NCBI RefSeq assembly: GCF_006345805.1
Contig: NC_043010.1
Span: forward strand, 15,252,001 to 15,316,000
Direction of reading: 5' to 3'
DNA length: 64,000 nucleotides
Origin: Octopus sinensis
Lineage: Eukaryota
Under the pieces are notes generated by a model. The model searched no databases and was not told the origin of the DNA. It saw only the letters and a list, made by a program, of their open reading frames with translations. A program made the translations under genes and the position numbers. Every line of letters starts with the position of its first letter. Within the stretch, counting starts at the first letter, position 1. Below are positions 40,416 through 56,474 of the stretch, in pieces.

Positions 40416-40774
40416 TTATCTATGCCATTCCGGGGGTCTTGGTGAATTTTCAGCAGGACCAGAGTCATTCATATCCATCAACGCCTCTCTCTGCAGTTTA
40501 ACACTGTTTCCAAGTAATTTATAAGCATCCGCCATCATGGCATAAGCTTTGAACTGTGCATACATAGATTTCGTCAAAATGGCCTCCATATTTTGACTGT
40601 CTGATGATTTCGGAAGACTTCCTTTCCAGCTTGACTTTTTTTCAGCAGCATCGTCATCTTCGTGGTGAGGTTTTTTGTGTTTGAATAGACCGCCCCAGAA
40701 CCTGCCGATATCTCGACCGATATCTGTGAAGAAGTTGTCATGATGTGGGTGTTTATCCGACTTTTTGTCTCCAC
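40416..40774 (-). CDS. Exon 2 (terminal) of uncharacterised secreted protein gene 1
   Basis: Acceptor tttattcgttgcag|GT in phase 1; open to a stop at 40416; GDKKSDK…EAILTKSMYAQFKAYAMMADAYKLLGNSVKL…WHR; AATAAA on minus at 40353-40358 and 40323-40328. Confidence 0.85.
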
Positions 40775-41959
40775 CTGCAACGAATAAACGATGCACATTT
40801 AAATTCATGTTAAACGTACACACACACACACACACACACACAACTCTCTCTCTCTCTCTCTCTCACACACACACACACACACAACTATCTGTGAATTGTG
40901 TTTCAGTTAGGTTTGAATTTCGGATCTGCGAACGACACAAAATACGTTGTGAGTCTACGTTTTCTAACTGTGAAGCAACTGCTTTTCTCTCGATGTACCT
41001 TCACCCACCTAAATATTATTAGTTAACGTGGTTTACACACAACCAGTTTTACATTGTATTTTCAATGATTAAACTTAGACTGACAGGACAGTAAAAAAAA
41101 TGACACCATAAACTTCCCGTTTCGTGGGCAATAAGTCACTAACCTGGGGTGCAACATGGAGTAATACTTTCCTAGCAGAAATATCTGGGGAAATCAGTGA
41201 AAGACCCACGATTCTTGGTGGACAATCGGAAGCTGTCAACCTAGCAGTTGCTCTCAGATTTCTTTTCGAAAATATAACGGTGAATACGACCGGTATACCT
41301 GTCTCGTGTGAACCAACACTTTTGTTTAATTTGTTCGGGTTAAAGATTGCTATCCTTAAGAATGAACTCATCGAGGTGGAAAAACTCTTTCATCACATCT
41401 CTCACTGAAAGGTAACACGTTCGCCATTTTGTCTGCCGGACGACACATTTGCATGAATCACTTAATCTATAATATAAGACTCTCGCTCTCAGTGTCTTGT
41501 TAATGCAAACAGCGCAGTGAACTACAGCACATTGTGATATTTTCTTAGAGCAAAATAGATTAAACACTTCCGCTCTGTTACGTGTCTTTCGACTCCATCT
41601 TCACTTTCTATCTTATTCTGCCACTTTCATGTTTTCTCTCTTGTTCCTTTTATCCTTCATCTTTAAGAAAAATATTTCGCGAAAAAATATATAATAATAA
41701 ATAAAATGAAAAGAAGGAAAAATGAAAGAAGCCACATGAAATAGAATGTACAAGCGGAGAGAAGAATGAATGAAAGTAGAGAGCGGAAGTGAAGAGAGAC
41801 AGAGGTAGAGACAAACGCAGACACAAGCATAAACCAAAGCATTATATATGCTTATGAGAGACACATAAAGAAACACACAGTTGGCCATAAAAGAATAACT
41901 TACCATAGACACAGACAGAATCCAAAATAAAATTTAGAAAAGCGCAATATGTGACTTAC

Positions 41960-42041
41960 CATATCCACCTATAAAGTTGAACGCATCAGATGTCACTACA
42001 GAGACAGCGAGAAAACAGAATACTACGCATAGTGAGTTCAT
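41960..42041 (-). CDS. Exon 1 (signal peptide) of uncharacterised secreted protein gene 1
   Basis: ATG at 42041; MNSLCVVFCFLAVSVVTSDAFNFIGGY+G; strong donor G|GTAAGT; phase 1 matches exon 2; spliced product 146 aa. Confidence 0.85.
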
Positions 42042-42110
42042 AGTGAGAGCAGTATTGAATAAGTTTCAAACCAATAAAAGAATGATGGATAAAGTTGAAA
42101 GTTATCCCTG

Positions 42111-42118
42111 TATTTATA
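42111..42118 (-). promoter_or_regulatory. TATA box of gene 1 (with Inr-like TCATTC at 42080-42085)
   Basis: TATAAATA on the minus strand, 77 nt upstream of the ATG. Confidence 0.65.
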
Positions 42119-42939
42119 GTTATATCACTGTCCCTCAATTAGATTAAACAATATTAGCAGATAATTTCTGCTGGATAAAATATATATAATAGCATATAAG
42201 TGGTTGCTCTGTTTAATGTCAGACAGGTGAATCAACAAAGCAGACGAGAACTTGAAGGGGAGGTTGGTGACCAAAACAGACGATAGTTGGTGGGGATGGA
42301 GAAAGAATGAAGAAAACAGACGATCAGCTGGTGGGGAGGGAAAATGAACTAAACAGATGATAGATTGGAGAGAGAATGCTAAGAAAAAAATAAATATATT
42401 AACAAATAAAGAGATAAAGTGGTGGAGATAAAGGTTAAAGAAAAATAGATGGAAGGGTTATCTAAAGTCTTTAGTAAACAATATTGCAACAGGTGATTTA
42501 CACAGTAAATAGAAAAACTGTTCACGATATTTTATTTTATATTCACTAATAGATACTTTCAGATAGTTTCCACACACTTTTTCTCACAATTAAAAGTTTT
42601 CATTGACATGTTCACCGTGTGTGAAATATTGTCTCGGAGTCTAGGTCTGTACTTTGTAATAAACTGGTGGTTTCTAGTTACGGCCTTGTACATGTAGTAC
42701 TGTTACATTATACATTGCACTGGTTCAGTCTTCAGCATGTAGCACTAATGTGACCATGGACTTCTGATAAATTTACAGTTTACTATATAAGACATTGCTA
42801 AGAGTTTGACAGGTGAATCGTTTATTGGCACAGTTTGGATAATTGTTAGTATTCTGATTAACTATATCGCATTTAACTGTCGTCTCCAACATGTCATAAT
42901 AATACATAGCACATGTGGTATTACTATTTACTACACTAA

Positions 42940-53168: not shown

Positions 53169-53899
53169 AGAATGCAGAAATCTGACTATATTTGTCAAAC
53201 ATTTTTCATCGAGTGATATCGAAGTAGAAAGAATAATACGCTCGTTTCTTAGAATCATACAGTAAAAGCACAAGTAACACGTAAAACCAATAAAATACCT
53301 CCCCTGAAATATGAGACCGACGCTGTCTCGGAAGGTTGATGATTAATGAATTCATCTGAATTCGAGGAACTTGATGCATATTATAGTCTATACATATTAT
53401 AATCTATACATTACCTTACCAATATAACGTTAGCTGATTCAGAGCTGTGGTGTGTCTCTACATGATAAAATATGGAAAAAGTTTAAAGAAGTCCAAATAA
53501 ATAAAATAGAGCAAATACCAGTTAGTGTTACGACTAGGCCATGCTTTTGTGTACTCGACATGTTAGGTACTTCATCAGCAGATTTTAGGGGATGAGAGGG
53601 AGAGAGAGAAAGGCTATAGCACTAATGGTGTCTTTTTAAAGATCATCTTGGATACAGGCAATTACAAACCGGAGCAGTATGAATAATATATAAAAACGCA
53701 ATACAGTCTAACATATAAAATGTACTGAGTAAAAAAGCTTCAATTAAATGGTGTTATTTCTGCAATTGAGAGGACAATATATTTAGGAGTGAACTTTGAC
53801 CTCAAAAGCAAATATTCAAAGAATTGGACATTGTTTCAGCCTCATTAGTTCTCATTAGCGGAGTATATTGTGCTCCTTTGATGATGCTATAAAATTATC

Positions 53900-54176
53900 T
53901 ATTTCATTTACTTGTTTCAGTCTTTTGACTGCAGCCATGTTGGAGCACCGTCTTTAGTCGAATAAATCGACCCTAGGACTTATTCTTTGTAAGCCTCGTA
54001 TGTATTCTGTCAGGCTCTTTTGTCGAACCGCTTAGTTACAGGGATGTAAGCACACCAACATCGGTTGTAAAGCGATGGTGAGGCAGCAAGCACAGATACA
54101 CACAGAAATATATATATATATAATATACGACAGGCTTCTTTCAGTTTCCGTCTGGTTGGCCCGCGGCTATAGTAGA
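53900..54176 (-). mobile_element. SINE family A (diverged, partial)
   Basis: Consensus match. Confidence 0.8.
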
Positions 54177-55599
54177 ACATTTTCGCATTTCAGCTTTATA
54201 CATATTGATATATATATATATATATATATATATATATATATATATATATATATATATATATATATGCATATTATACATATATATATATACACACATAAAC
54301 ACACACACCACACACACACACACACACACTATATATATGCACATACACACACATACATAAAGGTGTTGATTGCTACAGAATCGTATTGAATATTTTACCA
54401 TAATCATTACGGTTGTCTGCGCTTTGCGTTCAAATCCTGCCAAAGTCCACTTCCCTTTTTATTTTCTAGAAACCATTAAATAAAATGACAGTTTTGACAT
54501 GTCCTTCTGCTACACACAGACATGCATGCTCTCCAGCTGTTGTATCTAATGTATGTTACGCAAAATCCAGTGTAGGCGAACCGAGATGGTATCTGTATGT
54601 AACCGCGAGTACATGAGTACCCAACACTATTTGCTGAGACAGGGTGAATACTAACACTAAGATGTCTTCCATCTTGAATAGCGAACATAGTAATTTCTTT
54701 TACCTCTCTCCTTCTCTATCCACTCTATCTCTCTCTCACACACAGACACACTTTTTCTTTGTTTACACATACAAACACGCGCACACCCACACATACACAC
54801 ACACGCACACACACAAATATACACACGATAATTAAAAACTGAACTAATAACCACATATACACGCAAATACATTCATTCCAACAAATATATAATACATACA
54901 TGCATATTGACGAAAGGACATAAGCACACATACACACACAGTATATATATATATACACACACACGCACACACACGACACACATATATATTAATATATATA
55001 TGTATATATATATATGTAGATATACATATGTATATATTATATGTGATATACATATGTATATATATATATATATATATATATACATACATATGTATATATA
55101 TATATTATATATATATATATATATATATATATATATATATATATATATATATGTGCGTGTGTATATATATAAATGTTCATATACATACAAAGACACAGAT
55201 ACATATACATATACATAATATACACACACACACACACACATATGTATATATATATATATACATATTTAAACAGGAAATGAATCTATGTATTAACTATTCC
55301 CTGAAATATATGCAAACGATTTACTCTGACCATCGATTGCTGTCTTATATGGAAATTTTCAGAAAGGAAAGAAAATAAATCTTTGTAACCCCTGAACCAC
55401 CTACACTACATGCGCATACACTGACGCATACACTCGTACACAGAAAATAATTAGAAAAATAAACAGAGAACACAAACACAAAATTAAAAAAATTAAACTA
55501 AAGAAATAAATTGGGAAACTATATATTTTTTTTTATTTCAGAATTGCAGTGGCAATTACGGTTATATTATTCAAATGAGTTTTAAAATATGGATTAACT

Positions 55600-55998
55600 G
55601 ATAGATAGATAGATAGATAGATAGATAGATAGATAGATAGATAGATAGATAGATAGATAGATAGATAGATAGACAGAAAAATACTGATTAGTCAATTAGA
55701 TAGATAGATAGATAGATAGATAGATAGATAGATAGATAGATAGATAGATAGATAGATAGATAGATAGATAGATAGATAGATAGATAGATAGATAGATAGA
55801 TAGATAGACAGAAAAATACTGATTAGTCAATTAGATAGATAGATAGATAGATAGATAGATAGATAGATAGATAGATAGATAGATAGATAGATAGATAGAT
55901 AGATAGACAGAAAAATACTGATTAGTCAATTAGATAGATAGATAGATAGATAGATAGATAGATAGATAGATAGATAGATAGATATAGATATATAGATA
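55600..55998. repeat. (GATA)n with three copies of a ~26-nt interrupting unit (higher-order repeat)
   Basis: cagaaaaatactgattagtcaatta at about 55674, 55809 and 55907. Confidence 0.9.
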
Positions 55999-56094
55999 TA
56001 GATAGATAGATAGATATACCACAAAACGTATCCCTAACGAATATAGTGACATCTGAATTTTATCTGGTCAATAGCTTGTCTTACTCCTTGGTTT

Positions 56095-56474
56095 TTAGTT
56101 AAGAGCATCATGTACAAGGATGTGTTTCAATTTCACACCTAATCCTAGCAATTCATAAGATTCGGCCATTTTCTCGTACGCCACAAACTTAGCATACAAC
56201 GATTTCGTCAACGTTTCTTCGACAGGTGTCATTTGTCGTGATTTGTCTCCTGCACCAGCTTTCGATTTTTGATTGTCTGTCGTCGAGCCAGAACCACTTA
56301 TCCATCTATTTTCCCATCCGCCATACTTAGTGTCGTTATTATTATTATTTTTACTATTATCGTGGTGGTGGTCATCATCTTCATCATCGTCGTCATCATC
56401 ATCTTTGTAATAGCCTCTCAGTGCCATTCCGAATATATCGTAGTCTTGCTTGGGTTGCTTACTAGTTGTTGTTT
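56095..56474 (-). CDS. Terminal exon of paralogous gene 2 (upstream exon not located)
   Basis: Acceptor ctcattttgttttctag|AA in phase 1, as in gene 1; open 125 codons; EETLTKSLYAKFVAYEKMAESYELLGLGVKL is 19/31 identical to gene 1. Confidence 0.8.

Follow-up and report, generated by a model that had tools for sequence, protein, structure and literature searches.

We analysed a 64,000-nucleotide stretch of the Octopus sinensis genome (hereafter the window; contig NC_043010.1), in which coordinate c corresponds to 15,252,000 + c on chromosome CM016872.1 of assembly GCA_006345805.1, with 100% identity over 17,906 base pairs (bp). An initial annotation, made from the letters of this DNA, had proposed that two minus-strand genes of an unrecognised secreted family lie here, and both open reading frames (ORFs) were recovered at the positions it gave. 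The spliced translation of the first, gene 1 (LOC115219157), is an exact match to the 146-residue RefSeq protein XP_029645122.1, "uncharacterized protein LOC115219157". The second ORF makes up the last exon of gene 2 and is identical to residues 29-153 of XP_029645121.1 (153 residues), the tail of that protein; both genes carry a phase-1 intron. Gene 1 had been described as complete with a TATA box, a signal peptide and poly(A) signals, all of which were located. The features of the two genes, in window coordinates, are as follows.

42112..42118, minus strand: TATAAAT box of gene 1, 77 nucleotides 5' of the ATG.
41960..42041, minus strand: coding part of gene 1 exon 1, with the ATG at 42041 and 27 codons plus 1 base, encoding MNSLCVVFCFLAVSVVTSDAFNFIGGY + G-.
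40775..41959, minus strand: intron of gene 1, 1185 bp, phase 1, with a GTAAGT donor at 41959 and a TTGCAG acceptor (AG 40776-40775).
40416..40774, minus strand: coding part of gene 1 exon 2, including the TAA stop.
40494..40586, minus strand: conserved 31-residue motif of gene 1, EAILTKSMYAQFKAYAMMADAYKLLGNSVKL; the helix modelled by AlphaFold2 covers ~40467-40601.
40353..40358 and 40323..40328, minus strand: two AATAAA poly(A) signals of gene 1, 60 and 90 nucleotides 3' of the stop.
56475..64000, minus strand: the part of the gene 2 intron inside the window (whole intron 15,611 bp).
56095..56474, minus strand: last exon of gene 2, entered in phase 1 and including the TAA stop; last two bases of codon 28 plus residues 29-153.
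56128..56220, minus strand: conserved motif of gene 2, EETLTKSLYAKFVAYEKMAESYELLGLGVKL.

Several elements of gene 1 recur in its relatives, which fall into three paralog types described below. The TATAAAT box stands at -77 in the Octopus bimaculoides type A ortholog, as in gene 1, and at -75 in the type C gene. The intron of the O. bimaculoides type A gene measures 1169 bp, and its donor and acceptor sequences are identical to those of gene 1. The predicted splice junction of gene 1 coincides with an identical RefSeq model, and its GT/AG sites and phase are conserved in four species. Exon 1 encodes the signal peptide, whose hydrophobic core reaches a 19-residue Kyte-Doolittle mean (KD19) of 2.05 and whose predicted cleavage falls after TSDA.

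The window does not contain exon 1 of gene 2 (MNASYIILCALAILVVEASTTPSEKKN), which is located 15,611 bp upstream of the last exon at the window-equivalent positions 72086-72167. Consistent with this location, tblastn, DNA similarity and a scan for an ATG, a hydrophobic stretch and a phase-1 donor all failed to reveal such an exon within the window. RefSeq names gene 2 "transmembrane protein DDB_G0274347-like". No membrane-spanning segment is found in its mature product, where the maximum KD19 past residue 21 is 0.77, and low-complexity Asn/Asp runs are the sole likely resemblance of gene 2 to the Dictyostelium transmembrane protein DDB_G0274347. The name is unsupported and misleading, and these runs are evidently its source.

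The two genes are connected by the 31-residue motif, in which 19/31 residues are identical, exactly the count first reported. A wider block around the motif is identical at 22 of 44 positions (50%; BLASTP E=5e-11). A tblastn search with the motif, run over all six translated frames of the window, matched the other copy with E=5e-9 and showed no third copy. No similarity between the two loci was detectable at the DNA level. Different codons are used at 11 of the 19 identical motif residues, and codon positions 1, 2 and 3 of the motif are 74%, 81% and 45% identical, respectively. By the Nei-Gojobori method, the ratio of nonsynonymous to synonymous substitution rates (dN/dS) between the two motifs is 0.28/2.5, or ~0.1. 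The different codons and the low motif dN/dS together indicate that the resemblance is due to selection acting at the protein level. The two genes are thus an old duplication maintained by purifying selection on the amino-acid sequence.

We searched for relatives with a profile search of 1.84 billion representative proteins, the first profile being built from two sequences, and with two alignment-driven searches of 5.8 billion clusters plus cluster look-ups. The profile search of the representatives gave three real matches and one spurious one. Relatives came only from O. bimaculoides, O. sinensis, O. vulgaris, Argonauta hians and the octopod read set SRR11869390. The initial annotation had called the family lineage-restricted, and among these 1.84 billion representatives and 5.8 billion clusters octopod proteins alone were recovered; as far as public proteins show, the family appears to be restricted to octopods. 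On a tree, its members form three paralog groups.

Type A: gene 1; O. bimaculoides LOC106870533 (XP_014772147.1); A. hians GAB1604397.1.
Type B: gene 2; O. bimaculoides A0A0L8I3V7.
Type C: O. sinensis LOC115230163; O. bimaculoides LOC106884277 (XP_014791054.1, XP_014791055.1); O. vulgaris CAI9732541.1; A. hians GAB1604396.1; a genomic contig of SRR11869390.

In the alignment of 11 sequences, twelve columns of the motif do not vary at all (E, T, Y, F, A, Y, M, A, Y, L, G, V), and the family motif reads E-x3-T-[KR]-[SA]-x-Y-x2-F-x-AY-x2-MA-x2-Y-x2-LG-x2-V. Near-invariant residues comprise the N-terminal anchors G26, D30, W54 and K73 and the motif positions K96 and S97. The parts upstream of the motif had been taken to be unalignable, which proved not fully correct: they align across all paralogs at a GGY/GYY element, an HH-DN patch, one Trp and one Lys, with many indels in between. 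These shared anchors indicate that the N-terminal halves are homologous as well.

All genes have the same structure. Two coding exons with GT/AG sites are separated by a phase-1 intron after codon 27 in types A, B and C and in four species; the intron of A. hians type A follows codon 28, owing to one extra residue. The mature protein of ~11-15 kDa is free of Cys, as the initial annotation had noted for the sequence after the signal peptide. That annotation had also expected the cluster to extend beyond the window, and it does so, with exon 1 of gene 2 lying outside and a third paralog lying further on in two other species. In both O. bimaculoides and O. vulgaris, type C is found on one strand, followed by B and A on the other at ~36-40 kilobases (kb) from C, and gene 2 (B) is upstream of gene 1 (A) on the same strand in the window as in these two species. 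The A. hians genes A and C lie on opposite strands with 43 kb between them, and the O. sinensis assembly has type C on an unplaced scaffold of 75.6 kb.

In the type C gene, a single signal-peptide exon precedes a last exon that is present in two tandem copies, whose protein sequences are 85% identical and which correspond to RefSeq isoforms X1 and X2. The positions of these copies in the extracted loci are as follows.

O. bimaculoides, locus L004: 12943-13242 and 14010-14309.
O. vulgaris, locus L008: 17721-18020 and 18872-19171.

The presence of the duplication in both species suggests conserved alternative last exons over a recent partial duplication.

Three database entries around the family deserve comment. 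The O. vulgaris model CAI9732543.1 (293 residues; locus L009 10001-40831, OX597827.1) consists of genes B and A fused into one, joined through a GT in the last exon of B, a short exon resembling a repeat-like ORF of the window (~45977-46291, minus strand) and an AG in exon 1 of A. The own exon 1 of A is intact in O. vulgaris despite this model, and either faulty annotation or a read-through transcript probably explains the fusion; as a result of the fusion, the gene 1 protein is placed under the gene 2 representative in the 90% cluster. Another entry, MBK3487724.1 (P0014; 113 residues on a 557-bp contig), was deposited as Campylobacter fetus subsp. venerealis and is an octopus type C protein, which looks like cephalopod DNA contaminating a bacterial assembly. 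In A. hians, finally, the annotated type A protein is flagged partial, and the region of its signal-peptide exon occurs twice (locus L002 10001-10153 and 10374-10526), 373 bp apart and 86-88% identical to the query protein.

The initial annotation had stated that a confident match to a characterised family would end the novelty, and none came up in Pfam, among PDB sequences or with Foldseek. Pfam gave nothing significant, and no family of CRF/DH44/ELH helical hormones came up there with the window pair (E up to 10) or with the 11 members (E up to 1). PDB sequence profiles gave no significant match, and neither did Foldseek against PDB, where the query model is a lone helix and therefore little informative. 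A JGI metagenome scan contained no family member, and Rfam and tRNA scans of the window returned nothing significant. No description of the family or its motif was found in Pfam or in the searchable literature. The family is unrecognised in this sense, but not in the sense of new genes, as both are already RefSeq/UniProt entries. Two candidates were rejected. P0004, a 641-residue ENA metagenome protein with five STLTKNLYAKYAA repeats that was matched at E=3e-5, is unrelated, with an hhalign probability of 2% over 19 columns and an uninformative contig. The type A segment NFFTDIGRDIGRFW resembles orcokinin-type peptides over just a few residues, but it is present once per protein and is not flanked by cleavage sites, and the idea was dropped.

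We next compared the strength of selection along the protein. For types A and B, regional dN/dS was calculated between the O. sinensis and O. bimaculoides orthologs; for type C, the two tandem last exons were compared.

Type A: N-terminal part 0.54, motif 0.16, tail 0.34.
Type B: N-terminal part 0.62, motif 0.045, tail 0.47.
Type C (tandem last exons): N-terminal part 0.30, motif 0.11, tail 0.25.

The motif is strongly constrained, and the N-terminal parts are under relaxed purifying constraint with no positive selection (dN/dS < 1). The term hypervariable, which the initial annotation used for the N-terminal region, overstates the case, since the selection is relaxed purifying selection and the orthologs align well. 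The constrained helix proposed there is borne out by the values for types A and B (0.05-0.16 in the motif versus 0.54-0.62 in the N-terminal part) and by an AlphaFold2 helix with a predicted local distance difference test score (pLDDT) of ~80.

Specifically, AlphaFold2 models built from the 11 sequences contain one confident helix, residues 86-130 (45 residues, over the motif), with a pLDDT of 76-83. Elsewhere the models are disordered, with pLDDT below 50-60 and a predicted template modelling score (pTM) of 0.28, and type A shows a low-confidence helix at residues 42-58. Judged from the invariant positions of the alignment, invariant residues span an estimated ~220 degrees of the helix circumference. 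Fourier analysis of the helix yielded a conservation peak at 3.51 residues and hydrophobicity peaks at 2.4 and 3.51 residues, which correspond to the heptad harmonics 7/3 and 7/2. This heptad periodicity of conservation suggests coiled-coil packing.

The N-terminal 45-90 residues are of a different character. They are rich in Asp, Lys, Gly, Ser and Asn, and in types A and B also in His, with scattered aromatics; Asp makes up 13-18% of them, His up to 9%, Gly 9-18% and aromatic residues 8-13%. Type B contains a run of 13 Asp/Glu followed by HHH, and in type A the segment of residues 42-59 is strongly amphipathic, with a hydrophobic moment (muH) of 0.72. The isoelectric points (pI) are 8.1 for type A, 9.2 for type C and 5.0 for type B. 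Ahead of all this comes a hydrophobic N-terminus whose positions -1 and -3 are occupied by small residues, and the rest of the protein shows no further hydrophobic segment (KD19 <= 0.77). From the signal-peptide-like exon and the lack of a later hydrophobic segment, we infer that the proteins are secreted, as was first proposed.

Taken together, the data show that gene 1 and gene 2 are neighbours on one strand and belong to a family of three paralogs that is restricted to octopods as far as public proteins show; exon 1 carries the signal-peptide segment and exon 2 the Cys-free mature part. We favour the reading that these proteins are secreted, with the helix as an assembly or docking module and the disordered part as a variable effector; we would put its probability at about 0.55. 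The C-terminal helix would pack as a coiled coil or helical bundle with itself, with other paralogs or with one conserved partner, and so act in assembly or docking. The disordered, fast-evolving N-terminal part would be the paralog-specific effector, probably with its own properties in each paralog, and the poly-Asp/His tract of type B could bind metal ions.

Several points weigh against this reading. Oligomerisation is predicted from periodicity over ~40 residues, a length at which 3.5 is not cleanly separable from 3.6, and the C-terminal helix taken as a whole is weakly amphipathic (muH ~0.4). Signal-peptide cleavage was called by a rule of thumb and not by a trained predictor. The restriction to octopods depends on annotated proteomes, and squid and cuttlefish annotations often miss small genes; a two-sequence profile and a word-indexed search could, moreover, miss relatives below ~35% identity.

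A more specific possibility is that the family is an octopod-invented signalling or self-assembling system, in which the near-identical heptad helices of the three paralogs would build homo- or hetero-oligomeric coiled coils, each displaying different disordered N-terminal arms that respond to metal or pH. We regard this as unlikely; if true, the family would be either an extracellular ligand of a new class or a material protein that forms condensates, without counterpart outside Octopoda.

The same features were weighed against other functions. Prohormone or neuropeptide precursors are one of these: convertase cuts at KK/KR would release small peptides, for instance FNF[IL]GGY.GD, and/or a long C-terminal helical hormone that would act on a receptor as other Cys-free helical hormones do. 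The proteins are indeed small putative secreted precursors with a signal peptide in exon 1 and a mature part without Cys, and the helix is close in length to the long helical peptide hormones, whose helices are of comparable length. In addition, types A and C carry a dibasic KK or KR (residues 31-32) directly after FNFxGGYxGD, and KK/KKK further on. The cleavage sites do, however, vary between orthologs and between paralogs. In A. hians type A the first site reads KQ, types A and B as well as type C of A. hians lack the one before the helix, and AEKK of O. sinensis is AEKT in O. bimaculoides. There is also no conserved Gly-basic amidation signal (G[KR][KR]) and no Pfam match to any hormone family, and the conserved block of at least 45 residues with several conserved faces is longer than typical neuropeptides. 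A precursor role therefore seems improbable to us.

The composition of the N-terminal part brings extracellular material or biomineral proteins into consideration, such as those of cuticle, beak, statolith or egg coat, in which the disordered part would bind ions or condense with pH and the coiled coil would cross-link. The Asp/His/Gly/aromatic composition and the 13-Asp/Glu run plus HHH of type B fit such a role, as do the Cys-free mature part and a heptad-like helix that could drive assembly. Yet the proteins are very small and lack tandem repeat modules, GGY and GHG each occurring at most once per protein. Moreover, neither the identifiers nor the motif were found in the text of the Argonauta argo genome paper supplement, and the family was not found in the supplement text of an eggcase-proteome preprint, which comprises only 461 characters. 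We accordingly give this explanation a low probability.

Host-defence or venom-type effectors, that is, fast-evolving tandem secreted peptides whose amphipathic helices act on microbe or prey membranes, would account for the gene cluster, the duplicated alternative last exons of type C and the fast-evolving N-terminal parts. The strongly amphipathic, His-flanked type A helix (muH 0.72) and the basic pI of types A and C (8.1 and 9.2) point in the same direction. Against this, dN/dS stays below 1 throughout, so that no arms-race signature is present, and the three copies have been stable since before the Octopus/Argonauta split. The acidity of type B (pI 5.0) does not fit either, and the net charge of the candidate type A helix is zero at neutral pH. 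Nor did the family turn up in the supplement texts of an O. vulgaris salivary-gland proteome paper and an octopod venom-genomics paper, both weak negatives. On balance, an effector of this kind is distinctly unlikely. Finally, it is hardly credible that the two loci are not genes but chance ORFs or repeat/transposon fragments with a shared motif: the window is dense in microsatellites, copies of a short interspersed nuclear element (SINE) and fragments of long interspersed nuclear elements (LINEs), but the likeness exists at the protein level alone with synonymous sites near saturation, intact ORFs, splice sites, intron phase and TATA box are kept across species with dN/dS well below 1, and there are three loci per genome, unlike a dispersed repeat.

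The remainder of the window holds the following features.

18000-21100 (approximate), minus strand, and 13636-13872, plus strand: degenerate LINE-type retrotransposon fragments; several of their ORFs share a RPHLEYCCPLWSPHT segment, and one gives a weak match to RVT_1 (E=0.002) that does not reach the gathering score.
23994-24093: 100 N, an assembly gap.
10150-12530, both strands: long trinucleotide-repeat tracts that read as poly-Asp, poly-His, poly-Asn and poly-Ser ORFs.
10491-10565, plus strand, and 11515-11595, minus strand: a YFGDYED segment on both strands, indicating an inverted duplication.
5699-6160, 8214-8444, 28271-28570, 29259-29525, 46864-47380, 47760-48249, 60956-61354 and 61958-62269, both strands: copies of one short interspersed repeat, which has many copies and is usually flanked by (TA/CA)n microsatellites.

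The ORFs in the trinucleotide repeats at 10150-12530 are probably not coding; one of them was tested and had no Pfam match.

Both genes of the window are public and annotated yet uncharacterised, and an orphan secreted family of this sort is a known kind of thing in cephalopod genomes, with no pointer to an unusual mechanism. Cephalopod genomes contain hundreds of lineage-specific genes, very few of which have been tied to a function. The family described here offers a compact and tractable example, with three clustered genes conserved since before the Octopus/Argonauta split, one 31-residue motif under clear purifying selection and no homolog found elsewhere in ~15 billion public proteins. 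Its tissue and its partner, if found, could show it to be a secreted signal, a defence factor or a component of a material that is specific to octopods. On the practical side, three annotations call for correction, namely the RefSeq name of gene 2, the CAI9732543.1 fusion and the MBK3487724.1 contamination.

Compared with known systems, the family stands apart from the proteins it most recalls. The statement that it lacks reflectin, suckerin and known neuropeptide motifs was upheld, as the reflectin regular expression, Gly-Tyr/Gly-His repeats and conserved cleavage or amidation sites were all absent. Suckerins, histidine-rich beak proteins and reflectins have in common with the family only the compositional flavour of its N-terminal part (His, Gly, aromatics, few or no Cys) and their restriction to cephalopods. 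Suckerins, which are known from decapodiforms, and histidine-rich beak proteins are built of tandem Gly-Tyr/Gly-His repeats, whereas the family has no repeated GGY/GHG, no internal repeats visible in the alignment and no sequence similarity to them. Reflectins are intracellular and have no signal peptide, and their motif [M/F]D(X)5MD(X)5MD(X)3-4 is absent from all members by regular-expression search, with no Pfam match either. A signal peptide is present in the family, as in neuropeptide and prohormone precursors. Precursors of the CRF/DH44/ELH type resemble it further in being small and secreted, in having a C-terminal helical segment of ~40 residues and in lacking disulfides; they differ from it in that homology is not detectable (no such Pfam family was matched) and in that the family has no conserved flanking cleavage sites or amidation signal. 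The octopod proteins listed above, none of them with a described function, are in contrast true homologs of gene 1 and gene 2, sharing the motif, the two-exon phase-1 structure, the signal peptide and the syntenic cluster.

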